The position numbers and the translations under genes were made by a program. A stretch of DNA of 64,000 nucleotides, from positions 17,520,746-17,584,745 of the forward strand of contig NC_068998.1 of NCBI RefSeq assembly GCF_001194135.2, in the 5' to 3' direction. Each line of letters opens with the position of its first letter. The first letter of the stretch is position 1. This DNA comes from Octopus bimaculoides. Taxonomy: Eukaryota. The notes under the pieces are model-generated. The model was not told the origin of the DNA. It saw only the letters and a list, made by a program, of their open reading frames with translations, and searched no databases. Of this stretch, positions 34,561-64,000 are shown one piece after another.

Positions 34561-36444
34561 ACATCAGCTCTCTTGCATGTTTTGCAAGAATTATTTAAAT
34601 CATTGATATCAGCTTTTATTAACAATGATATTGAGGTTTTATAACAGTTGTAAACCTGCTAGCTGCAGTCAAGCATTCTCATACTTGATCTGGTTAATCT
34701 TAGTGCACAACCATGGTTCTTAAGCAATGGAGCTAAAAATATGTTTAGACAGACTGGCTGTATGTGTATGCTTCATGTTGAATGTTTCTTTTTGTAGTTC
34801 TGTCTGCTGTCATGCAACATAACTTCTTGCGTATTTCTGAAATATGTACAAGTTGTTATATAGCATTCTCTACACTAGCTAATCAATCTATATCTGACCT
34901 TCATAGAAAATCAATAATTCCTATCTATATCAATATTGATGAAAACTGAATTTTTCTTCATATCTTTTTCTCCACTTTCTATTCCTGCATGTTGACACCT
35001 TTGTGTAGAAACACCAAATCAAATTGCTCAGAATTAAAAAAAAAAAAAATTTTTTAACACTCACAAAATATATTATCACTAATTATTTTATGTCCAATTC
35101 CATTACTGTTTAAAATGATGTTGAATATAAAAATATTAAACAACATATGCTTCTTTTTTGTATCTCATTTTCTTTTTGTGGGTGTTTGTATGTGAAAATA
35201 TTGACTTTGTTTTGATAAATACTTAACACTCTTCCACACTAGCAGTTTGTGAGGGTGTCACTTTTCACACACACATGCATAATCAGATTTAATTTGATGG
35301 CCTAGATAAAGACATTTAGATGGGCAAAAAAGTATTAATTTAATAATTACTTGCTAAGTTTTATCAAACTTTTGCTCAAATTTTCATTGTTTTGATATTC
35401 GTCAACAGGAAGTGTCAAACAGCAGAAAAATAAAATATTTTCAATTAATGTAGATGCTGGATCCTGTGTTTGTTGTTATAAAAGTATAGTTTAAATATTT
35501 CTTTAGCAATTCTATAAGATAGTGAAATGTTCTCATTGGAAGCAAATGAGTAGATTGTGTGTGTGAGTGTGGGTGGGGTTTCCAAACAACCTCATGATGT
35601 TATCTATAGTAAATTATTTATCTTCTGAAATTGAATATGATACCTTTATATTATCATAATTTGTTAGGTTTTTTCTCTTCTACTTTAAATAACATCTTCC
35701 CATTGAAGATGTGTCTGTGTTGCAATAGAATCTCAGTGTACTAAATGTCTTCATATGATTTTCAAAAATGTCTTGATGTGCTATTTGATGAATGTCATTC
35801 CAATGAAAAACTTTGAGTAATGGAAGAGTAGTTAATTATGTATGTGCATAAAGAAATAGAGAGATAGCTATCCGGTTAAGGTGCTAGACTGTTGATCACA
35901 AAGTTATAAGTCTCATGATTATAACAATTGATTTATCCTTATCTTTTGGTTCAGCTAGACTGACTGATAGCTAGTTTCACTTCTACTTAACACTTAAGCA
36001 GTTAGGAAGGAAGGACATTCAGTTGTTGATACAGTTGCTCCAGCAAAAAAACAACACACTCATGGTTGAAAACAGCCAAAATAAAAAAATAAAAAAGAAC
36101 TTTTGTTTTATCAACACAATATATTGTAATTTGAGAATATCCATCAATTTACAATAACAACCTTACTGTATAATCATTTATTTCTTACTAACTATCACTC
36201 AACCTTTTCTTCATTAGAGTAATTGTTTAACTCTACATCATTAAGAGTCAACAAGGAGTCTCTCTACATGGACATTCAACTTGTTAGTAATAACAATTAA
36301 CACCATACCCATTTTAAAAGAAAGACACTGTGGGTTATATAGTCTGGGGTACACTATTGTTTAAAAGAAAAGTTAGTTGGTCACATTTAAAACACTTTGA
36401 TCATGGACCTATTCTAGTATTCAGTCTTAATATTAATTATTCTT

Positions 36445-39109: not shown

Positions 39110-40234
39110 TAAGAGTTCAAATTCTGCAAGGTCTTTGATTTTGTCATTCTTTCTAGACAAAAAACAAAAAAACAATAATATACTTGGATTAATCACTTGT
39201 CTGCATCACTACTAAGCTTAGCTCTGTTATGTTTTGTAAGTATACCAATATTTACTCACTGTTTATGTAAAGATATTGCACATATTACGCAATTAACTAT
39301 TTTTTTTTTCATACTTTGCTGATTGTATTTATTTATTTTATCATAGATTTGAATAATTCATTCAGCTTTGATCTGCTCAGAATAACTAAAACAAAAACTG
39401 AGACAAGGCAAGCTAATGACTGATTTGGAATGTAATTCAAAATATTAATATTTTAGTCATTCAGTATTGCATATGTCTTTTACTGTCATTTACTCTTTCA
39501 AATTCATTTCAGCTATATATATATTTATATAGAGAGTTTTACTAATGCAGTGTCATCTGTCTTTGTTTTATGTTTGCATATTTTTTTCTTCTCACATCAA
39601 ATATTTTCTTATGTAGTTTTACCTATTTAGTCTTGTTTGTTTATTTTCTTATTTAGACATGGAAATTATTTTTGGTGCGCTCTATAGCTTTTCCAGTTCT
39701 TACCAGTTAATGTTCGTTTTGGATCTTTAGTTGTCAATGATTAAAAGAAGAGAAAATAAGCAGGGAAGGTTTGTGAGTGAAGTGCTTAATGCATAGTCAG
39801 TGGGGGTGACAGGAGAATGTATGTTTGATTGGAGGTGCTATGTTAGAAAGTTCAGAAGATGAGTAAAGATTATTACAATAATGATTGAGAAAGCAGGGAG
39901 GATGCACTTGACATATGGGCAATATGTACAGTCTGTCTTTAATTATTTCTGTTCAACTAGCTTTGTTACACTCCCAAGATCACTCCCATTCACACACACA
40001 CACATTCACACTCTTGTAAGTACTCTGTCATACATGCTCATATTCACACTCTGGTGTACACACACATACATCCACACTTTAGCCTGAAAGCACACACAGA
40101 CCTTTGCACTTTGGCATGCATACATGCACTTTCACTCAGCTACATACACACATTCTCTTGCTGGCACATCTATATGCACAGTTGTGCATTTACACATGTG
40201 CCAGGATATTTACCTGCATGCTGACATATTTTCA

Positions 40235-43300: not shown

Positions 43301-44334
43301 GAAATCTTACCAATACTTTCATATATCACTTGATGCTATTATTTCCATCCACAAAGCCCGACCATATCTGTAAGTCATATTTAGTAGATACTTTCTCTTA
43401 AATTTGTTCAACTACAACTGTTACTACCTAAGTTTTGCTTCTAAATATGTACCATCCATAATTATAAATTCTTGAAATAGTCCCCTCCCCTTCCTTTGTA
43501 AGTTCTAAAATTTCAACATCGCTCTCTCATCTGCTCTGGTCTGGTTTTCAAATGGAATTATACTTTGGGCAAAACATTCCAAGTTTTGGAGAAATTATGA
43601 AAAATATCAATTTATATTTCATTTTAAGACTCAGTCAACTGAAATTTGCAAAAAAAAAAAAAAAACTTTGTTAAAAATTTGTAAAGATTTAATTACTTTG
43701 AAACCCATGGTGCCTTGCACCACTTGCTACAGGCAGAATTTGTCTTAAATACTGACTTTATTTATATATTAGTTGCACATCAACAATGTAGTATATTTTA
43801 TTTATTTAATATTGAAAAAAAAGTATGTTATTAATATAAGCATAATTATTGTCTTCCCTGTACTACTGAACATAGTAAATATTTATTATATGAGAGAGGG
43901 AGAGAGAGAGAGAGAATGTGAAACAATCTACCCTTCACTTTTAGTGATTTTGTGTTGTAAATGTTTTCTCAAGTGGGTTTCATGAAATCTACTGAATTAA
44001 TGGATAGGTTAGAATGTAATGTGAAATGGGGAAGTAAGACATTTAGCTGCTGTCCACTTATCTAGGAGTTTGTTGTTATTAATGTACTAGCCACAGTGAA
44101 AACATTGTAATTCAGATTGTAACAATGAAAGGGCTTTTCACAGGTTAACTAATGGTTTATTATCTTGATGACTATCACAGAGGACAGTGTCCATCAAGTT
44201 TACTTGATCATACATTTAAATGTATGATGTATAAAATGACTGTCATACAGGTCCAAACAATAATATTGATCAATGTCAGGATCAGGTGAAAACTCGACAG
44301 AGAAACAATTAGTTAACAGTTGAAGTATCTAGGT

Positions 44335-47640: not shown

Positions 47641-48441
47641 TGGTTAGATGAGTTATCTATTCAATAATGGAGAAAGCTGCTTATTAATTAGGTATGTAAC
47701 AATTACTAAAAGAAAGCAATTATTAAAGGGTTGACCATCTGGAAATATTTTTATAAATTCATGTTCTAAGAAATTTCCTATAATTTTGATTTCTCAAATT
47801 TATTGAATTTTTTTAACTCCAATTTCTCTCAAATTTAAATATTCATTGCATTCACTGCATCCAATTCTTCACAAATTTAGATATTCATTGCATTCACTGC
47901 ACAGTATTCCATTTTCATTTGCCAAGTCTTTCACTTTCTCTTTTTAAGTTTTAATTCACTATTTGGAATTGGGAATCAAATGTGAAAATATTATCNNNNN
48001 NNNNNNNNNNNNNNNNNNNNNNNNNNNNNNNNNNNNNNNNNNNNNNNNNNNNNNNNNNNNNNNNNNNNNNNNNNNNNNNNNNNNNNNNNNNNNNNNNNNN
48101 NNNNNNNNNNNNNNNNNNNNNNNNNNNNNNNNNNNNNNNNNNNNNNNNNNNNNNNNNNNNNNNNNNNNNNNNNNNNNNNNNNNNNNNNNNNNNNNNNNNN
48201 NNNNNNNNNNNNNNNNNNNNNNNNNNNNNNNNNNNNNNNNNNNNNNNNNNNNNNNNNNNNNNNNNNNNNNNNNNNNNNNNNNNNNNNNNNNNNNNNNNNN
48301 NNNNNNNNNNNNNNNNTTTACTAATGTCAAATTGATGGTCTCCAAGTGTCAGTAAAAAGCAAGTACTGACCTTGGGGGACACTAAACCTCCTACAAAACT
48401 TGCTAATCTGTGCCAAGTAAACATACTCCCATCATTTCAGT

Positions 48442-48541
48442 ATGGCTGATGGAGAAACATATAAACCACAATGGAATTTGGTAGAGTTCACATTGCTCTC
48501 AATTTTTCCTATTCATCTTTCATTCTTTCACATACATAAAG
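48442..48541 (+). CDS. Divergent SLC6/NSS-like transporter, coding exon 1 (N-terminus and shortened TM1): MADGETYKPQWNLVEFTLLSIFPIHLSFFHIHK
   Basis: Acceptor ccatcatttcag ends at 48440, ATG at 48442, donor G|gtatgt at 48542 (phase 1). QWNLVEFTLLSI resembles SLC6 'WxxxxEFLLSxI'. Phase matches the next exon. An upstream coding exon cannot be excluded. Confidence 0.75.
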
Positions 48542-48654
48542 GTATGTACCAGCTGATCTAAAATTTATAAAAATGTCTTTAAATCATCTTGAAAACTTTT
48601 TGCATGGTTTCTTTTTTCCTTCTTTTTTAAGGCTAAATTAACAAATGTGTATCT

Positions 48655-49030
48655 TTGTTAGCATAATTTAATGTCCTCTTTCCATGCTGGCATGGGTTGG
48701 GCAGTTTGACGGGAGCTGGCAAGTCAGAAGACTGTATTAAGCTGTACTGTTGGCTTTGGCATGGTTTCTACAGCTGGATGCCCTTCCTAATGCCAAACAC
48801 TTTACAGAGTGAACTGGGTGATTTTTACATGGCACCAGCAGCAGTGAAGTCCTCAAGTAACTTGCAAAATGAGACCCCTCAACTGAGTGGGGAGTAATAT
48901 TGAGGAAGGTGGCTTTGTACTATGTGATGAGAGGATAGAGTATGAGCAGGAGGAGACAGAAACAGGTATCTTGCAGTTGAGAAAGTACATAGCCACCCTA
49001 GTTGGAGGGTGGGGTGAGATGACAATGATG
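48655..49030 (-). mobile_element. RTE-related 3' UTR element in intron 1
   Basis: tttaatgtcc..tttccatgctggcatgggttgg...ggatgcccttcctaatgccaa matches the units at 10660-11060. Confidence 0.75.
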
Positions 49031-49889
49031 ATGAAGATTTGATGGGTTGTATCTCCATATTAAATTGTAATGCCAAGCATTAGAATTGTTAGTCAGTCCT
49101 ACAACATGTTAGTCAGTCCTAAAACCAGCAAAAGATAAAATTTTTGGATTCCTTTAACAATTTTGTTTCCTTTTTTTTTTTTATGTTAACCTATCATTAT
49201 TATTTAAATTGACTTTCCCTTTCTTGTTCTTTCTGATGTATCAACACTGAACATAAGAGATTCCTGGTAATTCAAGCTATTTTTCTTAGTTTGCCATTTG
49301 CTTAAAATTTAATGACTGTCCTTAATGAGAAAAAAATAGTAACATCATTAGCACATTAATACAACATAAATTGTTTTCTTTGTGAGGATGTCATTTTACA
49401 TATCCTTTATAGATTTTAAGTTATTCTTGATCCTAAGATCATAACCAGATCCAACTGTCATTAATGGAAAGGCATTCCAACTGTGACCATTCTTGTCTTT
49501 TTATCAGTCATAATGTATCTGGGAATATATTATCTGTGTCTTACCTTTTCTTTTTTTTAAAGAGAAATTTGTTCCCTATTTCTAGCAAGTTGAGTGAATA
49601 ATGGCTCCTGCAAAAAGTAGTAGAAAAGATTGTAAACAGCTGACAACTGGTATGTCAGTGTTCTACTGGGCCTTAATCTTTCTCTGATTTTGTTCAGGAT
49701 CAATAAAATTTTTACAAATAATATACTAGAGTTCGTTAAATCCTCAAAACAAAGTTGACTTTATGAAATCACTGGTAATATTATAAATAATTTTGTGTAA
49801 TGTTCTGTAGTGTTCTGTTTTATTGTAATCAAATTAAATAACAATCTGTTAGTGATTATATCTTAAATTATTTTTCTTTTCCATTTCAG

Positions 49890-50024
49890 ATTTGTCAGTG
49901 ATAATTCATTTCATATTTTTATCAGTGCTTTGTATTCCCCCCTTGTTTCTACAGCTGAAGTTAGGGGGACACTTACAAAAAGGAATTGTGGGAATGCTCT
50001 CAACCTATTTTCCTATATGGAAAG
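49890..50024 (+). CDS. SLC6-like coding exon 2 (TM2): (D)LSVIIHFIFLSVLCIPPLFLQLKLGGHLQKGIVGMLSTYFPIWK(G)
   Basis: ttttccatttcag acceptor, G|gtaagc donor, 135 nt, phase 1/1. Aligns without gaps to SLC6 '[26 protein letters not shown]...P..KG'. Confidence 0.88.
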
Positions 50025-50069
50025 GTAAGCTTATTAATAATTATCATCATTATCAACAATTTATGAGGT

Positions 50070-50690
50070 AATAAGCTGGCACAATCATTAACACTTCAGA
50101 CAAAATGCTTAGCAGCATTTCTTCCAGCTCTTCATGTTCTAAGTTCAAGTCTTGCCAAGGTCAGCTTTGCCTTTCCTCCTTTCAGGGTTGATAAAATAAA
50201 GTACCAGTTAAATACTGGGGACAATGTAACTAACTCATCTCCTCACTTCGAAATTACTGGTCTTGTGCCAACATTAGAAAGAATTATTAACAGATCATAA
50301 ATAATAATGAACGTGACTGTGTGGTAAAAAGCTTGCTTCCCAACCATATGGTTCCAGGTTCAGTTCTACTGCATGGCACCTTGGGCAAGTGTCTTCTACT
50401 ATAGCCTCAGGCCAATCAAAGCTTTATGAGTGGATTTGGTAGACAGAAACTGAAAGAAGCCCGTCATATATATGTATATATTTGTGTGTTTGTTCCCCCA
50501 CCATCACTTGACAACTGATGTTGGTGTGTTTACGTCCCTGTAACTTGGCAGTTCAGCAAAAGAGAGTGATAGAATAAGTACCAGGTTTACAAAGAATAAG
50601 TCCAAGGGTCGATTACTTCGACTAAAAGGTGGTGCTCCAGTATGACCACAGTCAAAATGACTAAAACAAGTAAAAGTATAAAAGAATAAA
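50070..50690 (+). mobile_element. Two adjacent SINEs in intron 2
   Basis: 50070-50280 belongs to the 14071 family; 50305-50690 belongs to the 19381 family with its full tail. Confidence 0.85.
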
Positions 50691-53419
50691 ATATTTAGTC
50701 CCATTCTTCTAAGTTGTCTTTCCTCTTCTAATAGTGATAAAATAGATACCAGTCATGTAATAGATTAGTTTGACTGGTTTTACCATTTTTCCTTATCAAC
50801 AAAATGTTATTCTGAATTTATTATTTTAATATCAAGAGTTTTGTATTTGAAATGAAAAAGTAAGAAATATTAATATACTTATAAACTTCCATTTTCTTTT
50901 TTTAATTTGAGACTGGCTTTTTAAACACAAAAAAATTAGGTTTTCTTCAAAGAAATTTTTTTTCACAGGTAAAATATAATTAAACAAATTTCAAGTTTGA
51001 ATATTTTGTGTGTTCTGTTTTCTTGTAAAATTTTTAATTATTTTTTATTTAATTTGTTGTTTTTCTCCCTCTTTTACTCTCTCTTTCTCTCTCACTCTCT
51101 CTCTCTCTCTCTCTTTCTCTCTCACTCTCTCTCTCTCTCTCTCTCTCTCTGATAAAACTAGACAATTTTCTCTATAATGCTTCCCAAATAATTAATAGCA
51201 CTTTTGTGATTTTAAAAGTGCTATCTGTTTACTTATTTTTAGAATTTGTTTCCATATGATTTACACTGCAGGATAACAAATCAATGATTTTGCTGCTTTA
51301 CAGCAGAATATCTAAAATAAAGCTAAGAATTAAAATTATTTTCATTCCTCCATTGCTTATTTCTTAACTGCTTCAGTTGTGTAGCATAGTCTTTCTTCTT
51401 ATCCACTGATCTGTTCTTCTGAGAAAGGTTGTAGTTGGCTGATTCAGAGTGATTTTGGTTTACTGGCTAAAGGGTTAGTAGTTTATGTTCTAATCACTAC
51501 TAGCTTTTTTAACCTAGTTGTACTAGTTACCAATCACAGACTTCTAATTCATTACAGAAGCTGCTTATTCACTGTTTTATCGAACTGGTCCCATTATTTT
51601 ACTGTGTTGAGGCCAAATTTTCCCCAAAATATTGCTTGAAGTGAAATTGGTTCTTAATATTACAAGAAATGAAAGTTTTTACTTTAGTGCCTCCTATTAT
51701 TAGGAGTTACAGAACCAAGCTCATATTATCCTTAACCTTTTTCTTTTATTTTTTAACCTGGAGAGGCAGCATATCTAATAATACCCTTTCAAAGACTGGT
51801 TGAATTTAATGTATTATTTTTATTGTATATCTCTAGTTTTATGAATAAAGATTCTCTGCTAATCACAAATACAGAAAGTATCCAGATTTCTTTTGAATTT
51901 ACAAAAGCTTGAAGCTATACTATTATTACTCTCAATTTACGTTTGATAAACTCATTTAATGAACAATTTCTTTCAAATGATCATTATTGCTGTCTGAGTT
52001 TTTATAACAAGATTTGGGAATTCTATCCATTATGACATTATAGTTAATGTAATTTAAATTTTGCTTTCATAATCAGTCATTTTGAAATGCCAATGTACTA
52101 TTGTTGCAAAGATTACACCAGTATTGGACTATTGCCAATTTTCTTCCCTTGAGAAAAGCCATTTTTCTGTTGTTGGTAGATATTTTTGAAACCCCCTATC
52201 ACTGATTGACACTTTATTTAAAATTACAAAAACTCGTAATTTTCCAAACATTTCCTCATGGTTCAGTTAATAATAATTATTACCTAGCTTTTATGTCTTC
52301 GGTTTCCTAACTTTGGTATACAAAATCTCATCATCACAAGACACCATATTCTGCTTTCATGCTTAGGTTTCCTCTGCTTGTTAAAAAAAATAATGTTGCC
52401 AGTCTCCAAATTTCCTTATAAATCTCATAACTCTAATCAAATTACCTATAAGTTTTGATTGGGCTAGACACCCTTGTCTTCTGCAATGATTACTCATAAT
52501 TTATATATGTACTAATTGATAATTCATTAGGTGATGTCTGATCAAGGTTTCTTTTAGAAAACAATTTATGTTGTTGAGTTGGGTAAATTTTGATGTGCAC
52601 ATGTGAATGCATGTTGATGATTATTTAAAACCATGGGTTAATCCTGATTCGGCTGACCTACGATAAAAGGTATTCCAGCCGAGACCTCTCTTATTCCATT
52701 TTTTTTTTTTCTCTTTCATACTATGGTAGCTCCCAGGACTCTATGTTCCATGCTCTTCTAAATTTTTAAGACAGTAGGGTGAGATTTGAAGGAGATTTTT
52801 GGCAGGTCTAGCAACCACAAGCTGCTCACTCATTGTTTAACAAGCCAACATGTGAAAATGTGATTTAGTATGTTATAAAAGTCAGAGCAGATGTAAGCTT
52901 AGAAAACTTTACTAATGCATTGACAGTAGCCAGATAGATTGTTTTATTCAGACATGTCTCTTTGAGACAAAGAACTACAATATCATAAAGTGCTCTCGCC
53001 TCTGCACCAGATTCTCATGTTAATCTAAAGAATACTTAACTGTATTTTAAACATAATGTCATTTAGTTTTACATGATTAACTTTTCAGAAAAAATCAAAC
53101 CTGTGCAGTCCACTTTGTAACTGATAAATAGTTGTTTTTGCTATTGGTATTAGTTTCCTTCCTTCTTTTTTATAATTAGAATGTTGTGATTGAATTTCCA
53201 TGATTTTGATTTTAAAATGAAAAGGAATTAAAAAAACAAACCTTCATGCAATCAATACATTCACTTATATGTGATCAGTAACTGCTTGGTTATTTTGAAT
53301 TTTGCTTTTAGTCCTGTCTTATGGATTCATTAATAATTGCTATGACTTGTGGGAATTAACCTCTTTAAATCTACACAGTAATATTGCAATTCACTTCTGA
53401 GTTTGCATTTTCTAAGTTT

Positions 53420-53750
53420 ATATATACATATGGTTAAGAAGTTCACTTTGCAACTACAGGTTCAGTTTTTCACTAAGCTGCACCCTGGGCAAGTGTCTTT
53501 GAATATTGCCCGGGATCAATCAATGCTTTGTGAAGGAATTTGCTATGTAGAAATACTGTGGCAGCCAATCATATATACATCTGCGTGTGTTGTGTTTATG
53601 TCCCATTTACATGACTGTTGAACAAAAGGAGAATGATAGAATAAGTACCAGATTTAAAAATAAGAACTAGAGTTGATTTTATTGACTAAAACCCTTCAAG
53701 CCAGTGTCTTAGCATTGCTGCAGTTCATAAATGAAACAAGTACAAAAATA
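53420..53750 (+). mobile_element. Degenerate tRNA-derived SINE in intron 2
   Basis: gggcaagtgtctt...gatagaataagtaccag...gactaaaacccttcaag...gaaacaagta tail. Confidence 0.7.
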
Positions 53751-53973
53751 TGATAAAGTCTTACAAATGAAATTTATCTGTAATTATTTTGCACACACAC
53801 ACACAGTCATAGCCATCATTTAGGTCTGAGATCCAATGCTATTTACATCCTTTTGTCTGTTAGTACAGTAAAATCTTATCTATTTCTATTAAAAATTTGT
53901 ATTCTGTGGATTTGCATACTACAGCAATTTTTTTAATTAAAGCAGTTTCATAATGTAGAGCTTCAGTTTCTTA

Positions 53974-54504
53974 CAGTTCTATATTTAAGAGATGAGGAAT
54001 TATGTACATTATTTACATTCGACGGATATTTGTCCTCATCTTGTTTGTTGTTAACACGTTTCAGCTGATATACCCTCCAGCCTTCTTCAGGTATCTTGGG
54101 GGAAATTTCGAACCTGGGTTCTCATTCCTAAGGTATTTTTTGATGTTATTATTATTATTGTTGTTGTTCAGGTCACTGATTGGAATCGAACTCGGAATCT
54201 TGGGGTTAGTAGCCCATGGGGTAATATGCCCATGGGGTAATATGCCCATAGGGTAATATACCCATGGGTATATGGTGTAGTGGTTAAGAGCGTGGGCTAC
54301 TAACCCCAAGATTCCGAGTTCGATTCCAAGCAGTGACCTGAACAATAGTAATGATAATAATAATATCGAAAAATGCCTTAGGAAGGAGAACCCAGGTTCG
54401 AAATTTCCCCCAAGACACCTGAAAAAGGCTGGAGGGTATATCAGCCGAAACGTGTTAACAACAAACAAGATGAGGGACAAATATCCGTCTAATATAAATA
54501 ATGT
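53974..54504. mobile_element. Palindromic insertion of two head-to-head copies of a tRNA-headed element with a hammerhead-like core
   Basis: Arms ~54005-54215 and ~54293-54504 are near-perfect reverse complements. A-box TGGTGTAGTGG and B-box GTTCGATTC on the right arm. CTGAAGA-A-GGCTG...CAGC(C/T)-GAAAC motif at 54053-54095 (-) and 54414-54456 (+). 12-bp TSD ttcagtttctta at 53962-53973 and 54505-54516. Central cccatggggtaatatg repeated ~3 times. Confidence 0.85.
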
Positions 54505-54568
54505 TTCAGTTTCTTATATAAACTTCTAATATCTAATTCCATTCCTTTGTTTCTTGAACTTACTTACA

Positions 54569-54627
54569 CAGATTACTGATGGTATCGATCATGTTCAGGG
54601 ATTCCCGCATTGGAGATTGACAGTGAC
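54569..54627 (+). pseudogene. Intronic 59-nt duplicate of part of coding exon 5 (ITDGIDHVxGFPHWR)
   Basis: 56/59 identity to 56785-56843. Confidence 0.92.
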
Positions 54628-54688
54628 TTCAATGTTTTGGCCTGCTAAGCCATCATCAGGCAGTCCAGAAACTTCGAAATCACTGTCA
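54619..54688 (-). other. Hammerhead-like hairpin motif (degenerate)
   Basis: Minus strand GACAGTGATTTCGAAGT-T-TCTGGACTGC-CTGATGA-T-GGCTTAGCAGGCC-AAAAC-ATTGAAGTCACTGTC: 17-bp closing stem with one mismatch, CUGAUGA core and short stem II. G12 is replaced by A and no stem I is evident. Confidence 0.5.
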
Positions 54689-54831
54689 CAACATTCTTGT
54701 TTGAGAATGATAAAACATATATATATATATATATATATTGCTTAATCAATACCAAAATAGTTTTTTGTGAAATTTGATGCTTCACTTTTTGTACATGTTT
54801 CTTATTTTTTTGTTTTTGTTTATTTCTGCAG

Positions 54832-55000
54832 GTGTAGGCATTGCAGCATTAGTGCATTTAATGTTAATTTGTATATACCAAGGTCCTGTTGTAGCAGAAG
54901 TGGCAAGTTATATGTTCATATCTGTAGCACAGCAGCCATATCTATGGGGTACTTGTGACAATTCATGGAATACAAATTACTGTTCTCCAGGTGTTGTAAG
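54832..55000 (+). CDS. SLC6-like coding exon 3 (TM3 and start of EL2): VGIAALVHLMLICIYQGPVVAEVASYMFISVAQQPYLWGTCDNSWNTNYCSPGVV
   Basis: tatttctgcag acceptor, AG|gtaaga donor, 169 nt, phase 1/2. Has the hallmark SLC6 EL2 motif W-x-x-C-x-N-x-W-N-T-x-x-C. Overlaps ORF 54774..55004. Confidence 0.92.
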
Positions 55001-55769
55001 GTAAGATTTCCTTAAGTATATGCCCTATTTTATAATGGAACTCTTTAGTATTATTTTATATCGCAACAGGCATGAATGAAGGGTTAAATATTCCACTTCT
55101 CTGTCATGAGAGAAGGGTTTAGTTTCAATCTCACAGTGATAACACTTTTAGCAAGTATTTTCTTCTATATATTCTTGAGTGAAATTAGGTTAGCAAAAAC
55201 TGTGAGGAAGCTCACTGGATGAACTAGAGCTGTAATTCAAAAGGTTGGCTTCATCACAATGTCACACTAGGTATGCCTGAGAATTACATTAAGGATACAT
55301 GTATTTGTGCGTTACTCAACTACTTGCACTATAATATAACAGTTCCATTGATTGAGCCGTCGGATCAAAGCAGGCATTACATAGTAATTCTTAATTACAT
55401 CGTGGCTCTCAGAAGTGTGTGGCTTGTAGGTCATTGGAATTTTGAAGGCTGCACAAAAAAGAAAATTATGTTGGCCAAATATTATCACAAAAGCGATGAC
55501 ACGATTTTTTTCTCTTTTTTTTTTTTAACCTTTTTACAACTACATTAATGATGATATTCTCTCATCTCCTACCATCATATCTTAATTAGAGCACTACAAT
55601 AATTCTGCTACAGGTTGATTAGTGATTTCATCAGATGAAAGGTGCCATAAACAACAGTGTGAAAAGAAATCAATATTTGATAATGAACATTGTGTTACTT
55701 TTTTCTGTCTTCCCTACTACTTATATTGAAATAGAGGTGTTTTGTGACCTATTTTTCAATTTGTTGCAG

Positions 55770-55823
55770 TTCTATAACTGGTTTGCCAGAAATGACAAAG
55801 AGATCAGCATATGAATTCTATAC
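55770..55823 (+). CDS. SLC6-like coding exon 4 (EL2): (S)SITGLPEMTKRSAYEFY(T)
   Basis: ttgttgcag acceptor, AC|gttagt donor, 54 nt, phase 2/2, keeps frame. SAYEFY matches the SLC6 'SPAEEFY' motif. Too short for the ORF track. Confidence 0.8.
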
Positions 55824-56771
55824 GTTAGTATTATTTCTTTAACTCTTCTATATTTTCTATATTATATTAACAGTATTTATTTTAAATTTTTTTAGCTTTT
55901 TTACTTCACCAGCAGTTATGTTATTTTCTTCATAATTGTATAATTTCGCTTCGTTTTCTATAATTTACTTCATTAAATTATGAGTCTAGTTTAATGTAAT
56001 TAGCAGTGTGCTTGTTTATTACATCTTTCTCAGTGAGTAACCAACAGACTTGATTGCCAATTTCTGAACATAGGTTTGATTCATTCCTCATAAACTTTAT
56101 TCCTTTGCTGAGAAAATATTTTATTAACGTTGAGTTATAATAAAAACAATTTAGTATTAAACTGAGGAATTATTCAGTACCTTTTGTAGAGTACATATTT
56201 ATCATACTTTTTTCAGACTTTGAAGTCACAGTTACTACTTCTTGTAAATGTATAATGAAAATATTTTACATAGATATATCTATTTCCTGGTATATTTTAA
56301 TTGATTTTCTTCTTCTTTAGTCATTTATTTTATTTTGGAGGTTGAGGGGAAAGTAGTCCAAGTATGCTGCTCAGTTTAACACATCACCTGGTCCTTGAGA
56401 GCCTCTCACATAGTTCATTCTGTTAAAAGCATTTGACAAGACTGCACTAAATGCCTAATTTGAATATCTGCAGTTCAGTTTTACCAGTTCAGGAAGGCAT
56501 CACACAGTTATGAATACTACCCTGCTTCTCTTGTAAAAAAAAAAAAAAAAAAATTTTAATGTAATCTTCCATTGAGCTGACAGCACATACTGGTTTCAAT
56601 TCTCTTATTCAAATTTATTTCAAACATACCAGTGATGCCCTTGAGAAAAGAATGACTGTCATATTCTCAATGTGCTATGAATTTGTGGCTGTATGGATTA
56701 AGTTTTTCAAAAAATGAATATATATCAGTAAAGCAACATGTTCCTAAGCAGTTTTTTTTTTTTTTCCACAG

Positions 56772-56943
56772 GTTTGAATTCTGGCAGATTACTGATGGTA
56801 TCGATCATGTTCATGGATTCCCGCATTGGAGATTCACAGAGACAGTCAGTCGGATGACTGTACCTATGTTGCCTATTGCGTCTGCATCAGTTTGGCTCCT
56901 GGTACTATTGATGGTAGCACTCGGCGGACGTGTCTTTGGTTGG
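56772..56943 (+). CDS. SLC6-like coding exon 5 (EL2 end and TM4): FEFWQITDGIDHVHGFPHWRFTETVSRMTVPMLPIASASVWLLVLLMVALGGRVFGW
   Basis: Poly-T/ccacag acceptor, TGG|gttagt donor, 172 nt, phase 2/0. Resembles 'ISxGIxxxGxxxW...WxxxxxxxxKG'. Within ORF 56677..56997. Confidence 0.88.
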
Positions 56944-59859
56944 GTTAGTACCTTTTTAATTATAACTACTTCATTACTCTACCTACTTTGTTATTGAAAT
57001 AAATATTTTTCCTCATTTGTATGACAGTTATATTTCTTCACTTCACTCCTACATCTGATAAGAAGTCATCAATCATATGAACTGTATTAGTTTCTCACAA
57101 TTTCTGGAGAAAGTGATTTACAGGCTTAATTATTCATCCAATAAGGTAATTTTGCTGTAATAAATTGCCACTTCATATATTAGCATCAAATAGAATATCT
57201 GATACTAGTGCTGCTCTTTTCCCTTTTATGTGTTAATATATAAGTTCTGGTTAGAGTAATAATAGTAATTTTTTTTTTGCGTGTTGTTGTTGTTGTAAAA
57301 CATAAAGCTGATCTTTTCATCTCTAATCAATTTGTTTGCTGTGGTTCTTTTTCCCCTTTCATCATTTTCAGTCTCACAGTCTAACTATTTTCAATATCGA
57401 GGCAGATAAATATATGTAAGTTGCAGTGTGTGTTTATATATGTGTGTGTGTGTATGTATGTGTGTATGTATGTATGTATATCTATCTATGTATGTATATA
57501 TATGCACTATTAAGATGAGTTATCATTAGCTTAATATGACCACTTCAGATTATTAACCTCTTCGTTTTATTTATAGTATGTTTGAATCAGTTTAGTCTCA
57601 GTCATATTTAGGGATCTGACTCCTTCATTTAAGCATATCTTTAGTTGTGTTTAATCTTTAACCTAAGGTCTTGCAGCTCTCTTGAACTCTAACACTGGGT
57701 TTCAATGTCCCTCACCCCTACATGTCACAGTCTGTTAATGGTTAAATGTGTTAAAAATTGTTAGAAAGGAAATTTTGGTGTCCAAACAACCTAAAGATTG
57801 TTATTGCTGTTTAGCCTCCAGTCAACTTTGATTTAGTATATCTATGATCAAAAGTGTTCCAATCGTGACCATCCTTTTTATTTCATTATCCAATATATCT
57901 TTCTTTCCCTTTTCTAAGACAGTTGGGTGAGATTTTTGTCTAACAGTTTAAGCCATGACATAAATACTTCACAGCACACATGATGATTATAGTAGAATGA
58001 ACTGGTTGAAATATAGTATAGGAGAAAGATACATGTCTGGAAAATTTAGCATAGCTTTATTCTAAATAATTCACTCCATTACTGTAAATTTTACCTAATT
58101 TTGCTTTCGTACTTCATTTCATATGACTTAAGTGAAATATAGTTGCATAGGTGCTTCTGTGCTCATCTAAAAGTTGTCAAAATAATTGTCATTTGCATTT
58201 TAAGAACAAATTAACTCTAGTTTATCATCATTACTAGAATTAAGGCAGGGTAATAGCTGAAAGAAAAAGAAAAAAAAGAGTAATAAATTCAATATCTAGC
58301 AGTTTTTAAATTCAGGTGTCATTTCTCTACATTCTGTGTTTAAAATCCCACTGGAGTTAACTTTGCCTTCATCACTTCTGAGTCAATAAAAATAACGTGA
58401 AATAATGCCAAGTTTAATTCAATCAGCAATATCCTCTCTCTCTTTCTCTCTCAATTTATAGACCTGTGCTGATGTGAAAAGTCATTACTATTGTCTTGCA
58501 AAAGCCAAGATTTTGGGAACTGAATTGTGGTAAATTCTTCTCAATATCATATGTTCATTCTATCTTGGTCTTTTTTTTTTTTTTTTCCATTAGAATATGA
58601 AGTTTTAGATGAGATGTTTGCTATCTCAGACAAACATATACCATAGATAGAATTTTTTTTTTTTTTTTTTGGTCATTGATTGAGGTGTAGACAACAAAGA
58701 TAGCTACATTATTTGTTTTGTTGGTAACTTTTAGAAAATGATAGGAAAACACAAACTTTGTATGAGAATCGATTCTTTAGTTCATTAATATCATTGTTAC
58801 ATAAGACATAAAAAATTAATGCAAATGTCTGTTTCTTTTGTGCTCAGAAATCTGAGGTGAGTTTTTTTTTTTGTTGATTTTTGTGTGTGTTTTTTTCTAT
58901 GTCCCTTATTGATAAATATCGATTTTTGAAACAATACTGTTCTTTAGTATGTGAAATATACATGTATATTAACATATAGCTATTATTTTAATGAAATATG
59001 TCTTTTGTGTGTAACCACATAGAAACATTGAACTTTTGAACTTGGAAAATGGAAATTTCTTGGATCATGGACCTCTGATAGTATCCACTTCAAATATAGG
59101 CATTTCTTCAGTGATTGTCTAAAAAATAAGCTTTAAATTTTTTATTAGTAATGTTGTAGCAAATGATTGCTAGGGTTGGGTCCACTGGTTTCAGCTAAAG
59201 TCATTCTGAGATTCTTTGAATCTCAAGGTCTGTAATTTTGCTTATTGATAAAATCCTTCTGGTGAAAATGATTTTCATTGATCAGTATCAATTTTCTTGT
59301 AGGTGTAGAAAATACATCTATTTTCATAGTGTTTTTGTTGGTTTGTAGGCTATAAATTTTGCATCAAATGAATATTAGAAAATATATGATAAATTCTATC
59401 ATGAAATTTATCATCACCATTGTCCTTTATCTTACTGGAATTTTCATGATCTCATATTCTCATTTAATTTACTTAACCAAAACTTAGTTTGTGGTCTGCC
59501 AATTAACCTTGCTTTAATTAAAATAAGACAATTATTTTGGACCTTTTCCCTGTTGAAATTATTAACTGCTATAACACATTGAAGACGTACATCTTTCATT
59601 ATTATGAGCTTCAATTTATGTCTGCAAATATAGAGAGAAATAATTAAAATTATATAACACAGGCTACAGCTATTTTCAATAAGATGTGACAACACATGTG
59701 GATATATATACACATGCATACATATGAAATTTATCTATCATTTCTAATTCCAGTGAGTCATGCAAATATCAAGATTTGAATAATCTTCCAACCCATACTA
59801 ACATAAGAAAAAACTAATGTAAAAAAGTTATTTGAAATAAAATGGTGTATGGTCAGACT

Positions 59860-60050
59860 TTAGTTAGCTGGCAGAGACGTTAGCATGCCAGGCGAAATGC
59901 TTAGTGGTATTTCGTCTGTCTTTACGTTCTGAGTTCAAATTCTGCCACGGTCAACTTTGCCTTTCATACTTTCAGGGTCGATAAATTAAGTACCAGTTGT
60001 GTACTGGGGTCAATCTAATCGACCTTTTGGGCCTTGTGCCTAGAGTAGAA
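59860..60050 (+). mobile_element. SINE copy in intron 5
   Basis: ttctgagttcaaattctgcc..ggtcaactttgcctttcat...aagtaccagtt as in other copies. Confidence 0.8.
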
Positions 60051-60354
60051 AAGATTATTTCAAAATAAATAGATATTCTTATCTTACACCAATTATGCTA
60101 CACAAATATGGAGATATATAAACAGTGATAAAAATAAGTTAGCTTACCATTAATATAAGCCTTTTGACATTGACTCTGGTCTTTCTTGTTTAAAGTGATC
60201 TAAATTAAAACTTTCTATTAAAATTTTTTGTGTTAATTTATGTTTCAAATACCATCTTAATAATGGCAGTTATTTTATTAAATTCTTTAATATTTTCAAG
60301 ATAAATAATTCATATAAAGGCAGTGTATTTTCAGAGAAATATGTTAACAAAGTG

Positions 60355-60690
60355 AAGGTATGTGGCCTAGTGGTTAAGGTATTTGGTTCACAACCATAAG
60401 GTCCTGAATTCAATACCCAGCAGTGCACTGTGTCCTTGAGCAAGACACTTTATTTCACATTACTCCAGTCCACTCAGCTGACAAAAATGAGTTGTACCTG
60501 TATTTCAAAGGGGCAACTTTGTCATATTCTATGCCGCGCTGAATCTCTTTGAGAACTACATTAAGGGTGCACGTGTCTGTGGAGTGCTCAACCACTTGCA
60601 TGTTAATTTCACCCACAGGCTGTTCTGTTGATTGGATCAACTGGAACCCTCATCGTCATAACTGACAGAGATCCAGTTTATGGTAACAAA
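60355..60690 (+). mobile_element. tRNA-derived SINE of a further family in intron 5
   Basis: A-box TGGCCTAGTGG, degenerate B box, then gtgtccttgagcaagacacttt (SINE central-domain-like motif). Confidence 0.7.
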
Positions 60691-60839
60691 AGGGTTAAAT
60701 AGAGCATTGAAGCATTTGATATTGTTAATCATTGAAATGCATATCAATATATGCCAAAGATAGCATGACATTAAGAAAAAAAGTAAAAAATGCAACTATA
60801 TCATTAGACATTATAAGGTATATTTTTCTTTACTTTCAG

Positions 60840-61001
60840 ATTTTAGCTGTTGTTACTCCTATTGCAATCTCCTGTACACTGGTTGTATTAGGTTATGGAC
60901 TTGCACGCTTAGATCAAGAACCTACAAAAGAAATGCTGAGAATTATTTTTACAATACCAGATTTTAAACTAAGTCATTTTACATCTGAAGATATCTTTAC
61001 A
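60840..61001 (+). CDS. SLC6-like coding exon 6 (TM5 and EL3): ILAVVTPIAISCTLVVLGYGLARLDQEPTKEMLRIIFTIPDFKLSHFTSEDIFT
   Basis: ttactttcag acceptor, ACA|gtaagt donor, 162 nt, phase 0/0. Hydrophobic TM5 followed by a P-D-F-K-L segment like SLC6 'P.W.KL'. Within ORF 60732..61082. Confidence 0.85.
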
Positions 61002-61596
61002 GTAAGTTATTGCTTTTTTTTTTTTTTTTTTTTCTCTCCCCCCACTTTCTCTGATAGTGGATATTTGAACTTAATAATCTAGGGTTTCCTAAACGCTGAT
61101 TCACTGATAACTCTTACTTGTCAGCAGTCAGTTTTACCTTTCATCCAGTCTTTAGTGGTCAATAAAATGCTAACCTGATACTGTGAAATAGCAGTTAGTT
61201 GTCAGTGAGCTAAACACACTGCTTAGTTTCTATTCCCATTACTTGACTATCATTCTTAGAAAGATTACAACTGTCACCACTGAAATCATTAATTCAAATA
61301 TCATTGAGGAACACCAATGGTGATTACTAGTGAAGGAGGGAGAAAAGATAGATATTTAATATTTGATCTCATTTATCATTCTTACATGAGATAAATCATT
61401 CTTGTAATAAATGATAACTAAAATCAATTTGATCAATTTTAACTCTGATTTTTAAGGAAAATATGCCTTGTGGTATTTAGATACATCTCTTTACAATGAG
61501 CTCAAATCCTGTTGTGGTTGATTTTGCTATTCATCTTCCAGGAAAGTACAGGAGTTAATTAAAACTCCATGGTTTGTACCAATTAATAAATCACCA

Positions 61597-61637
<41 letters not shown>

Positions 61638-61690
61638 TGTTGTTGTTGTTATTATTATTAGTGTTGTTGTTATTATTATTATTATTATTT

Positions 61691-63577
61691 GTGGTCAAGG
61701 TGTTAGTGAAGAAGCTGACGCTTGTTGTTATTGGGTTGATTGGTGAGGCACAAACGTGTTCCATCCCAAAACGATCCATCCACCACAACCTCCACCTCAT
61801 GCAATACATTATAGAGGAAGTGGCTAGGGAAGCTGGCATGGGTGGGACCCAGATCAATTTAGATCAATTGAAAGCTTTTGATAGGGTCAACCATTCTCAG
61901 AGCAGCCAGTTTTCAGGGGCTGGATATCGATAATATCCAGTGGTCAAAGTCAATGGCCACCTATCAGAATTGTTTAGTATTTTACACTCAGTCCACCAAG
62001 GTTGCCTGCTCTTGCCTTTTCTGTATGTGTTAAGCTGAGAGCCATTCTTATGAAAAATGGAGGCATTGAGTGGTTTCCCACAAGACCTAGGATGTGAGAG
62101 AAGTGTGTTGGCACATGCAGATGTCACCGTAATCGAGGCAGTCGGCACCACTCTAAAGGAATGTGAAGCAGCAACAGGAGCAAAGATTAACCTGGAGACA
62201 AATCAGTAGGTCTGCAGGTCTATGCTAGAGAGGCAGGTCTATGCTGTCCAACAGTGTTGTAGGGCACTGGACAGATGGACCGATTAAGGTACTCAGGGTT
62301 TGAGAGGAAACTGTCTCTGAAAGGTCAGGTGGAGGTGGCGAATACATACATCGCATCGTCTGACCGTCATGCCTTGCCCTGAGTCACACCTCAACAAGTT
62401 GGAGCATATACTTTTTTGCTTTATGTGGAAGGGGCAAGTTCCTCTTGTCAGGCAGTTCAACTGCTGTCAACAGCTGCTGAATGGAGGGCTGGGCATGCTG
62501 TGGTTGCTGATACGTAGGCATGTGCTGTGGCCGTGGCATCTCCAGCGTTTCCTTGATGGTGAGTAGGTGTGGTTGCTCTTTGTCAGATCTGCTTTTCCTC
62601 AACTCGTCTCCTTAACGGAACTGCAACCCTGGGTCGAGCAGAGACGGAGGGATGGTGAGTGGCACCTTGAGTGCTGACAAGCCCTCTTAGTCGGTGGAAT
62701 GTGGCTGGTGGAAATTCTACCTTGGTGTTCTATAGGGGGTTAGTGGAGGATAGGTGCAACAACATCCTTAGGGAGGCTCTGGCCTTTGATGAGGAACAAC
62801 TGAGGACTTTCAGGCCAGGGCCTATGGATAACTTTCAGAAATCCCTGACCTGGCAGTGCTACTGGGGAGCGTTGCTGGTTTGGGATAAATTCCACAGGCA
62901 CGGAAGTGCTGTCAGTTGGAGCTGCCCAAGATGTGTGCAGAGCAATGGAAAAGGTTCTGAACACACTCGTCAAGTGCCCGACAATTTCTGATATGTGGGT
63001 TTATGTTGAGCACTTGCTGTCGCGTGTCGCACAGATCTGGCTATCATCCGAGTCTATTGTTAAGACTGCTCTGCTCCCTTCCGTTGGTTGGGAAGGCCAG
63101 ATAGCTTCCATCTGCCTGGTGGCCATGGTGAAAGAGGTTGTATGGTGAACAAGACTGAAAGAGCTGAAGATGGGATCTTTCGTCTCCGGTGAATTTCTGA
63201 TCAAGTTTTTCAGGTTTCACTTGAAGAGGCACATCAAAGTGGAGAGGGAGGTATTCCCTTCTAGCAAATTTATTGAAAGGTGGATGAGAGTGGCAAGCAT
63301 GGTTTGCGTGAATGGGATTGCTCTGAGCATGCGCTTCTGAGTGGAATAAGAGAGAGAAGAAGCACTTGCCTAAGTGGTCAGGAAAACCATGATTTTCTGT
63401 GGGGTTTCCACAGTTTTCCTTTGGAAGTCCCCCCACCTTTGGGGAATTGTAATTGTTTAATTTTATTGGTTCCTTTTGTTATTGTTTTATATGTTTACAT
63501 GGTAAACCCCTCCATTTGTGATTTGTATTTGTGTCCTTGTGTGTTCAATGTAGGCCTATGTGGCCAATAAAGAAAAC
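61691..63577 (+). mobile_element. 5'-truncated Tx1/L1-clade LINE (RT and C-terminal zinc-binding region), decayed, in intron 6
   Basis: INLDQLKAFDRVNH, SVHQGCLLLPFLYV, VLAHAD, WQCYWGALLVWDKFHRHGSAVSWSCPRC; AATAAA at 63566 followed by (ATT)n. Confidence 0.88.
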
Positions 63578-63894
63578 ATTATTATTATTATTATTGGATG
63601 GTGGTGATAGTAGCGTTGGAGGTAGAAGTGATACAATTTTTCTACACTAAACATTGTGGCATAAGTATTTTATAATCTCTTAAGTTTTAGATTTCAAATT
63701 TTGTGCTTATATTTAAAAATCAACTCCAATAAAAACCATCCTACCTGTATTACATATATAAAATAGTTGAAACAGTTTCAGAATATTCTATAAAACTATA
63801 TAGTTACTTGACATTATAGCTTTTATGGCTTTATAGAATATCGAAATACACTCTTTGCAAAATAATATGTATTGATACAATCTTTTTTTTCCAG

Positions 63895-64000
63895 AAATGC
63901 ATGAGTTCTTTCGTACACATTCAAATGGCCTTACCATTATGGTTTGGAATTGCTCCAACAATGGGTAAAATGACAGGCTTTGGAAAAATTCATAAAAATG
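63895..64000 (+). CDS. SLC6-like coding exon 7 (TM6), truncated by window end: KCMSSFVHIQMALPLWFGIAPTMGKMTGFGKIHKN
   Basis: ttttttttccag acceptor, phase 0, open frame to the window end. Q...FG spacing fits SLC6 TM6 'QIFFSLGxGFG'. Confidence 0.75.

Follow-up and report, generated by a model that had tools for sequence, protein, structure and literature searches.

Introduction

SLC6 transport is defined by the sites for Na+, Cl- and substrate that lie in transmembrane helices (TMs) 1, 6, 7 and 8. What, then, may a protein do that has kept the fold of this family and lost these sites? The question is raised by a gene on the + strand of a 64,000-nucleotide (nt) stretch of the Octopus bimaculoides genome (assembly GCF_001194135.2, contig NC_068998.1, positions 17,520,746 to 17,584,745), which we call the window. 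An earlier note, made from the letters of this stretch, had described an SLC6-fold gene lacking essentially all canonical ion, substrate and gate residues and had proposed it as a candidate pseudo-transporter or transceptor.

Here, we report that the gene is intact and transcribed, that its splicing is as predicted, and that strong purifying selection acts on it. Judged by sequence comparison, it is not a lone oddity but belongs to an SLC6 clade of spiralians that is old, already annotated, and uncharacterised in function. Selection, expression, and the lost sites are all consistent with the earlier reading, but the picture of a single odd gene does not stand, as the clade is spiralian-wide, with members in at least five phyla. 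We consider it quite probable that the protein is not a canonical Na+/Cl--coupled symporter. As to what it does instead, the sequences and a structural model lead us to favour, tentatively, a Na+/Cl--independent carrier ahead of a non-transporting sensor or scaffold. In the literature, we found no description of a spiralian SLC6 clade, of an SLC6 pseudo-transporter or SLC6 member without ion sites, or of a link between this clade and the Drosophila genes bedraggled (bdg) or bloated tubules (blot). Thus, the clade and its lost sites are new here, while the gene itself is already annotated.

A transcribed gene under purifying selection

The seven-exon model proposed for this locus was rebuilt base by base on the + strand. 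AG and GT flank every exon, exons 1 to 7 have incoming phases of 0, 1, 1, 2, 2, 0, and 0, and the spliced exons form 898 nt of stop-free sequence with a 299-residue product, just as had been predicted. This product is identical to residues 1-299 of a 599-residue database protein (P0188, present in NCBI, UniRef, and EukProt). The earlier note had placed the gene at 48442-64000; its exons stand, but the gene continues past both ends of this range, with an alternative first coding exon upstream (Table 1) and residues 300-599 beyond base 64000, so that TM1 to TM6 alone are encoded within the window. Exon 7 is cut about 1 nt short by the window end, judging from the donor of a land-snail ortholog (P0001, 38% identical) that has the same seven-exon layout.

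RNA data agree with the predicted junctions, a check that the earlier note had suggested. A cuttlefish mRNA (L002) and an octopus mRNA (L008, from run SRR3401912, described as an octopus metatranscriptome; PMC11662614) each match the window as exactly seven blocks, and the edges of these blocks coincide with the predicted splice sites. Given the identity with P0188, these alignments, and the matching exon layout of the snail ortholog, the gene model is not a product of chance.

A word-indexed protein search yielded only one truncated snail model (P0001), and an exhaustive profile search, covering 1.84 billion representatives, was needed to recover the family. The latter returned a 599-residue cuttlefish ortholog (P0002, E = 1e-154), whose cluster comprises a genome model of Sepia (Acanthosepion) pharaonis together with Logan assembly contigs about 3 kb long, which we take to be spliced mRNA because they are too short to hold the introns. 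P0002 is listed in 66 blocks of the index, with spliced transcripts across many RNA-seq assemblies. The cluster of P0188 also includes Argonauta hians ("taurine transporter-like"), another octopus with a 615-residue isoform, and the RNA contig L008. The gene and its relatives are thus already in the databases, under automatic and probably misleading names. As for the snail model (297 residues; L001, Candidula unifasciata, around position 34700), its stop codon falls within the perfect GTAAGT donor of exon 7, and the next called snail "gene" starts with an exon (L001, 43538-43660) for TM8 of the same protein.

Over 897 bases, the window differs from the octopus mRNA at 37 positions, 32 synonymous and 5 non-synonymous, giving a synonymous divergence (dS) of 0.18, a non-synonymous divergence (dN) of 0.007, and a dN/dS ratio (omega) of 0.04. 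The comparison with cuttlefish shows no indels, 84.6% amino-acid identity, and proportions of synonymous and non-synonymous differences (pS and pN) of 0.71, near saturation, and 0.088. The ratio is about 0.04 at both the short and the long timescale. In the cuttlefish comparison, omega is at most about 0.07 in every exon except exon 2, where synonymous sites are saturated and give no ratio, and within cephalopods it is 0.02-0.05 in the exons of TM1 and TM6. The earlier supposition that the protein is probably still under selection is therefore borne out.

Loss of the ion, substrate, and gate residues

Clade members were aligned by MAFFT with canonical sequences that included a SERT-like protein (P0091, in which numbering equals human SERT (hSERT) + 33), and a second alignment was made with hmmalign to a hidden Markov model (HMM) built from 26 canonical sequences. 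Except in TM1 and TM6, the residue mappings listed here are concordant between both methods; the roles assigned to the hSERT residues are established knowledge.

The Na1 ligands N101, S336, and N368 are lost: TM1 contains no Asn or Asp, S336 becomes A276 in an ambiguous register, and N368, which also belongs to the Cl- site, is Y309. Of the Cl- site, Y121 is replaced by H40, Q332 by H272 or another residue depending on the register, S336 by A276, and S372 by W313. Around Na2, L434 corresponds to Y374, and the side-chain ligands of TM8 are gone, D437 being L377 and S438, which also serves the substrate, F378 (both read from P0188, as TM8 is encoded outside the window). The conserved TM2 glutamate, E136, is Q55. 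In TM3, Y175-Y176-N177, of which Y176 belongs to the substrate lid, reads Y94-Q95-G96, and W182 is E101. G340 is W280. Throughout the clade, the TM2 glutamate is gone together with the side chains for Na1, Na2, Cl-, and substrate; glutamine occupies the position of E136 in 12 of the 13 clade sequences of our site table, within the motif Q-x-[KR]-x-G, and leucine does so in Lingula (P0028). The replacements of Y121, E136, YYN, and W182 by H, Q, YQG, and E, first read in the earlier note, were recovered by MAFFT and hmmalign alike, as was the disulfide motif of extracellular loop (EL) 2, with C120 and C129 aligning to C200 and C209.

The octopus TM1 does not align to the canonical HMM, and the TM1 of molluscs is left unaligned by hmmalign. 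The motif W[RK]FP is present in the canonical matches and in no clade member, in agreement with the reported loss of GNVWRFP from TM1. From the N-terminal Trp to the TM2 Glu/Gln, the spacing amounts to 44 residues in the octopus protein and 54 in the SERT-like reference, which matches the earlier estimate of a TM1 shorter by about 10 residues; the missing residues correspond to the end of TM1b and EL1, at about hSERT 104-113. This 10-residue deletion is common to the cephalopod, bivalve, gastropod, and chiton orthologs. Lingula, Owenia, Lineus, and a second mollusc paralog have spacings of 51-53, some with an R-[FL]-P-Y remnant.

In TM6, the register is uncertain in cephalopods. The conserved Trp of their relatives sets HIQMALP opposite QIFFSLG, two residues away from the pairing of QIFFSL with QMALPL proposed at first; the register of that pairing falls, and the loss of F335 and S336 holds, as no TM6 register restores them. 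The cephalopod counterpart of the lid (Y176-F335) is Q95 with M/L. The outer-gate pair R104/E493 is H/K and I/T in cephalopods and R/D in bivalve orthologs. At the intracellular gate, K8, W11, and E392 align to R79, W82, and D452, with K8 not conserved across molluscs. Canonical residues that are retained include W82 (W11), P131 (P50), G140 (G59), and the EL2 cysteines, of which C129 is at least 95% conserved among mollusc orthologs. Thus, the claim that essentially all canonical residues are lost is right for the ion, substrate, and outer-gate side chains, but too broad for these retained positions.

A spiralian clade with the SLC6 fold

Family membership is supported by a match to Pfam SNF (PF00209) of 56.1 bits, above the cut-off of 27 bits. 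This match covers only residues 38-178, TM1 and the TM4-TM6 part being too divergent to align, and single-sequence matches to solved SLC6 structures also begin at about residue 37. A profile of the clade, by comparison, covers human PROT, TauT, GAT3, BGT1, GAT1, GlyT2, and DAT over all 12 TMs, with E values from 4e-71 to 1e-48.

Members were found in bivalves (Solemya, unionids, Mytilus, Mercenaria, Mya, Ruditapes, and Mactra), gastropods (Haliotis, Pomacea, Batillaria, Nucella, Plakobranchus, and Candidula), and a chiton (Liolophura), and, outside the molluscs, in the brachiopod Lingula, the annelids Owenia and Capitella, the nemertean Lineus, and the flatworm Macrostomum. All of these members carry automatic names that do not agree with one another (taurine, GABA-ine, GABA-1/2, glycine-1/2, proline, XTRP3, and B(0+)-like). 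In a neighbour-joining (NJ) tree of 52 sequences, which is rough and has long branches, the clade is monophyletic in 100 of 100 bootstraps. The mollusc orthologs with a short TM1 group together in 81 of 100. Haliotis and Mya each have a protein of this type (P0181 and P0177) and a second paralog in which TM1-EL1 is of normal length (P0022 and P0043). Because of the method and the long branches, the placement of the clade among canonical SLC6 subfamilies is not settled by this tree. No clade members outside Spiralia were seen among the search matches, the best other matches being canonical SLC6 proteins led by insect Inebriated (Ine), and no arthropod protein with the clade signature was among them.

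From an alignment of 13 clade sequences, an AlphaFold2 model was built for the cuttlefish ortholog, whose identity with the window protein is 87%. It contains 12 TMs, with a mean pLDDT (predicted local distance difference test) of 78.6 and a pTM (predicted template modelling score) of 0.82. The modelled TM1 is split into helices 13-19 and 22-29 (pLDDT about 91), with a break at residues 20-21 and TM2 starting from residue 35, and TM6 into helices 259-276 and 283-291, with a break at 277-282. The superposition on dDAT that had been suggested gives a Foldseek TM-score of 0.82; against dDAT, hDAT, NET, GlyT1, TauT, GAT1, and SERT, target-normalised TM-scores are 0.74-0.83 at 16-20% identity. According to this model, the ortholog keeps the full 12-TM LeuT/SLC6 fold, including the split TM1 and TM6.

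Possible functions in light of the distribution of constraint

To describe constraint, we used 20 mollusc orthologs, of which the non-cephalopod ones are 28-42% identical to the octopus protein; mollusc lineages diverged in the Cambrian. At least 95% conservation was observed at 67 positions, many of them Pro or Gly at helix ends. They include Q55, K57, P75, K78, G79, Y105, W194, G228-Y229-G230, P278, W280, G288, K289, N299, W302, M320-A321-P322-Y323, Y363, D388, N389, Y462, Q465, E471, R472, and H533, with K289, D388, E471, and R472 as charged residues on the cytoplasmic side.

Our favoured reading, though a tentative one, is that the protein would keep alternating access without Na+/Cl- coupling and act as a facilitator or exchanger. 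Its central site may be a remodelled, aromatic one, as in CaiT or the exchangers of the APC family, an aromatic cluster that we infer from the alignment. Several points favour such a carrier. The split helices and hinge-type Pro and Gly residues are retained, charged residues on the cytoplasmic side are conserved, and within cephalopods TM1 and TM6 are as constrained as the rest of the protein. Furthermore, LeuT-fold proteins are mostly carriers, several lineages of which operate without Na+ (CaiT, with its aromatic box, and the APC exchangers are well known), and non-transporting LeuT-fold proteins are rare.

Other observations weigh against this reading. We had expected the old central site to be the best-conserved part of the protein, which would have favoured a shared ligand, but the opposite was obtained. 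At the 34 positions equivalent to the canonical S1 and ion sites, the octopus residue recurs in 0.32 of the non-cephalopod orthologs, compared with 0.44 for all TM positions, and 9882 of 10,000 random TM subsets scored at least as high. TM1 (0.33) and TM6 (0.36) are among the least conserved helices, ranking with the peripheral TM9 and TM12. This low conservation of the core is the reverse of what canonical SLC6 proteins show and is hard to square with one shared substrate; it also speaks against a small ligand common to the orthologs at the old site. In addition, TM1b is only 8 residues long, the outer-gate pair is absent in cephalopods, and the invariant polar residues are all cytoplasmic, which fits an interaction surface as well as a gate.

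The same observations suggest a different role, which we regard as a serious possibility that ranks second. The LeuT fold may have become a rigid membrane module in which hydrophobic or aromatic side chains occupy the former sites for ions and substrate. Working through its conserved cytoplasmic face and its C-terminal tail, the protein would then serve, without transport, as a sensor, a scaffold, or a regulatory subunit. Such a pseudo-transporter would explain why, of all TM positions, those equivalent to the core are the least conserved among molluscs, and why TM1b-EL1 is truncated and the outer gate lost. The exceptions to the low conservation of the core are hydrophobic, mostly aromatic residues at former ion or helix-break positions (F28, P278, W280, Y309, and F378). 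The bulky residues Y309, F378, and W280, conserved among molluscs, stand in place of ion ligands, as do W313, Y374, and L377, which are specific to cephalopods. Conservation is also somewhat higher towards the cytoplasm, in the TM halves (0.47 for the cytoplasmic versus 0.41 for the outer ones, one-sided p = 0.03) and in the loops, where intracellular loops (ILs) 1, 3, and 5 share the octopus residue at 0.65-0.72, and EL1-EL4 and EL6 at 0.09-0.34. However, working SLC6 transporters, too, have well-conserved short cytoplasmic loops, and this pattern is therefore only a hint. The split TM1 and TM6, the many hinge-type Pro and Gly residues, the omega of 0.02-0.05 in the exons of both helices, which indicates a constrained core within cephalopods, and the rarity of non-transporting LeuT-fold proteins all speak against a pseudo-transporter.

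The C-terminal tail, which is encoded beyond the window, would fit such a role through a conserved motif. A P[ST]AP-type motif, E-P-[ST]-A-P-P-[YF], is common to the tails of P0188, P0002, P0003, P0158, P0172, and P0181. After it come [FY]-P-[ML]-[DN]-x-[LV]-P-Y and, close to the C-terminus, an acidic E-x-E-P-L. These motifs could act as trafficking signals. A bolder form of the proposal, that the spiralian clade is the first SLC6-derived pseudo-transporter, with its sites plugged by conserved aromatics, its TM1b truncated, and signalling or scaffolding exerted through the cytoplasmic face and the P[ST]AP tail, is conceivable but in our view rather unlikely.

A third alternative is that coupling to Na+ or H+ persists and the protein is a symporter with non-canonical ligands, i.e., backbone carbonyls together with new side chains such as the TM1 histidines or K57. 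Several of the Na1 and Na2 ligands of SLC6 proteins are indeed backbone carbonyls, carriers of the ApcT type have a Lys in place of Na2, and a basic residue is found two positions past the TM2 Gln throughout the clade (K/R57). Nevertheless, all side-chain ligands of Na1 (N101, S336, and N368), Na2 (D437 and S438), and Cl- (Y121, Q332, and S372) have been replaced, most of the cephalopod replacements are hydrophobic, and the TM1 histidines are specific to cephalopods rather than conserved in the clade, which makes this alternative improbable.

The 5′ end of the gene

Could the short TM1 be an annotation artefact, with a canonical TM1 exon hidden further upstream? A 321-nt assembly gap (47996-48316) does lie 125 nt before the ATG, within the 5′ untranslated region (UTR) of exon 1 or directly upstream of it. 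However, positions 250-480 of the octopus mRNA are colinear with 48317-48547 of the window at 96.5% identity. Its 5′ UTR portion (250-374) corresponds to 48317-48441 and reaches the edge of the gap, so that only part of the UTR can fall in it, and an in-frame TAA at 48418-48420 closes the frame upstream of the ATG. The sole alternative upstream coding exon adds 16 residues that form no TM, and equally short TM1 helices are found in cuttlefish transcripts and in the bivalve, gastropod, and chiton orthologs. We therefore reject the hidden exon, which the earlier note had named as a possible flaw in its reading, as extremely improbable. A further segment, 39178-39291, matches the 5′ UTR of L008 (positions 110-231), but at 81% identity, compared with 90-99% for the true exons; it is thus a doubtful UTR exon and more likely a dispersed repeat, and the real 5′ UTR probably runs into the gap.

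That the gene is a processed, decaying, or recent pseudogene, or its splice model a chance product among repeats, is refuted. The introns do hold repeats, among them a decayed long interspersed nuclear element (LINE), as well as a 59-nt segment copied from exon 5, and the SNF match is limited in extent. But the frame is open, omega is 0.04 at two depths rather than near 1, the product is identical to an annotated protein, spliced transcripts occur in many RNA-seq assemblies, and mollusc orthologs at 28-42% identity share intron positions.

Gene structure and intron elements

The DNA of the window is AT-rich and eukaryotic, with seven runs of N (assembly gaps) of 10-321 nt each, and it contains no tandem paralogs of the gene. 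The exons and the elements found in the introns are collected in Table 1. The peptide of the alternative first exon is present exactly in the window and equals the N-terminal extension of the 615-residue isoform of a sister octopus (P0187).

Table 1. Exons of the gene and elements of its introns, in window coordinates
Feature	Position	Strand	Phase	Description
Alternative first coding exon	43962..44008	+		MFSQVGFMKSTELMD + 2 nt; donor AG/gttaga; splices to acceptor one base 5′ of the main ATG
Exon 1 with 5′ UTR	48317..48541	+	0	Coding part 48442-48541; UTR from at least 48317 (N-gap edge); residues 1-33: short N-terminus, TM1a, truncated TM1b (FPIHLSFFHIHK)
Internal acceptor of exon 1	48440/48441	+		cag/T; ATG at 48442
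Exon 2	49890..50024	+	1	TM2 with clade signature FLQLKLGG (Q55 replaces the SLC6 TM2 Glu), IL1
Inverted-repeat element, intron 2	54006-54504			About 500 bp, MITE-like (miniature inverted-repeat transposable element) or foldback
59-nt copy, intron 2	54569-54627			Direct copy, 95% identical, of the 5′ part of exon 5 (56785-56843)
Exon 3	54832..55000	+	1	TM3 (Y94-Q95-G96, E101), start of EL2 with Cys pair C120/C129
Exon 4	55770..55823	+	2	EL2 segment
Exon 5	56772..56943	+	2	End of EL2 (DGIDHVHGFPHWRF), 12-residue insertion specific to mollusc orthologs, TM4
tRNA-like sequence, intron 5	60361-60422	+		33.5 bits; probably a tRNA-derived short interspersed nuclear element (SINE)
Exon 6	60840..61001	+	0	TM5 (LGYG), EL3
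LINE-like stretch, intron 6	about 61700-63100	+		Decayed LINE-like open reading frames
Exon 7	63895..64000	+	0	TM6 (HIQMALPLWFGIAPTMGK), beginning of IL3

The 59-nt copy sits about 200 nt upstream of exon 3 and about 65 nt downstream of the inverted-repeat element. As there are only two copies in the window, it is best taken as a local duplicate and not as an exon. The converse possibility, that the start of exon 5 is an exonised repeat, was rejected, since this part of exon 5 is a normal SLC6 EL2 segment that is conserved in cuttlefish and snail. The arms of the inverted-repeat element are 183 nt long, 93% complementary, and 76 nt apart, and its open reading frame has no Pfam match. The LINE-like stretch gives weak but ordered matches to RVT_1 (E = 0.004) and zf-RVT (E = 0.016), and the bin that covers most of it (62001-64000) has the highest GC content in the window (0.44). 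The tRNA-like sequence reaches the Rfam gathering score but was not called by ARAGORN.

Significance and comparison with known systems

A whole clade in at least five spiralian phyla has dropped the sites that define SLC6 transport, yet keeps the 12-TM fold under strong constraint, and may thus be viewed as a natural experiment on the LeuT fold without ion coupling. As the database names are probably misleading, inventories of neurotransmitter and osmolyte transporters in cephalopods and other spiralians should not count these genes. If the protein were indeed non-transporting, it would represent a new functional class within SLC6, although divergent orphan members of the SLC families are not rare.

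With canonical SLC6 transporters (PROT/SLC6A7, TauT, GAT1/3, BGT1, GlyT1/2, DAT, NET, SERT, and dDAT), the octopus protein shares the SNF match, the predicted 12-TM fold, the EL2 Cys pair, the N-terminal Trp (W82), and the Pro and Gly of TM2. It differs from them in lacking both the G-x-x-x-G-N-V-W-R-F-P motif and 10 residues of TM1b-EL1, in the replacement of E136 by Q, Y176 by Q, N368 by Y, S372 by W, and D437/S438 by L/F, in the absence of F335/S336, and in a very short N-terminus, with 10 residues before the Trp. Moreover, TM1 and TM6 are among the least and not the most conserved helices in its clade.

Insect Ine, an orphan SLC6 protein linked to osmolytes, could seem a closer relative, as Ine-like proteins (P0030 and others) are the best-scoring sequences outside the clade in the search library and several clade members have been automatically named "GABA transporter ine-like" by NCBI. 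Nevertheless, Ine keeps the canonical TM1 motif (WRFP), the TM2 Glu, and a long N-terminus, unlike the clade, and a grouping of the clade with Ine was obtained in 0 of 100 bootstraps of the rough NJ tree, so the orthology that the names suggest is not supported. Drosophila bdg and blot are also atypical or orphan invertebrate SLC6 genes, a likeness drawn only from descriptions in the literature.

Other comparisons concern mechanism alone. Yeast Ssy1, the transceptor SLC38A9, and prestin (SLC26A5) are likewise transporter folds under selection in which coupling has been lost or repurposed. However, their signalling or motor roles have been shown experimentally and most of them keep a conserved ligand site, whereas the old site of the clade is variable across molluscs. 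CaiT (of the BCCT family) and ApcT, AdiC, and LAT1 (of the APC family) belong to the same fold class and likewise lack Na1 and Na2 ligands, although they are not homologues of the clade at the family level. The central site of CaiT is an aromatic box, to which the aromatic residues W280, Y309, F378, and F28 of the clade, placed by alignment at former ion and substrate positions, may correspond.

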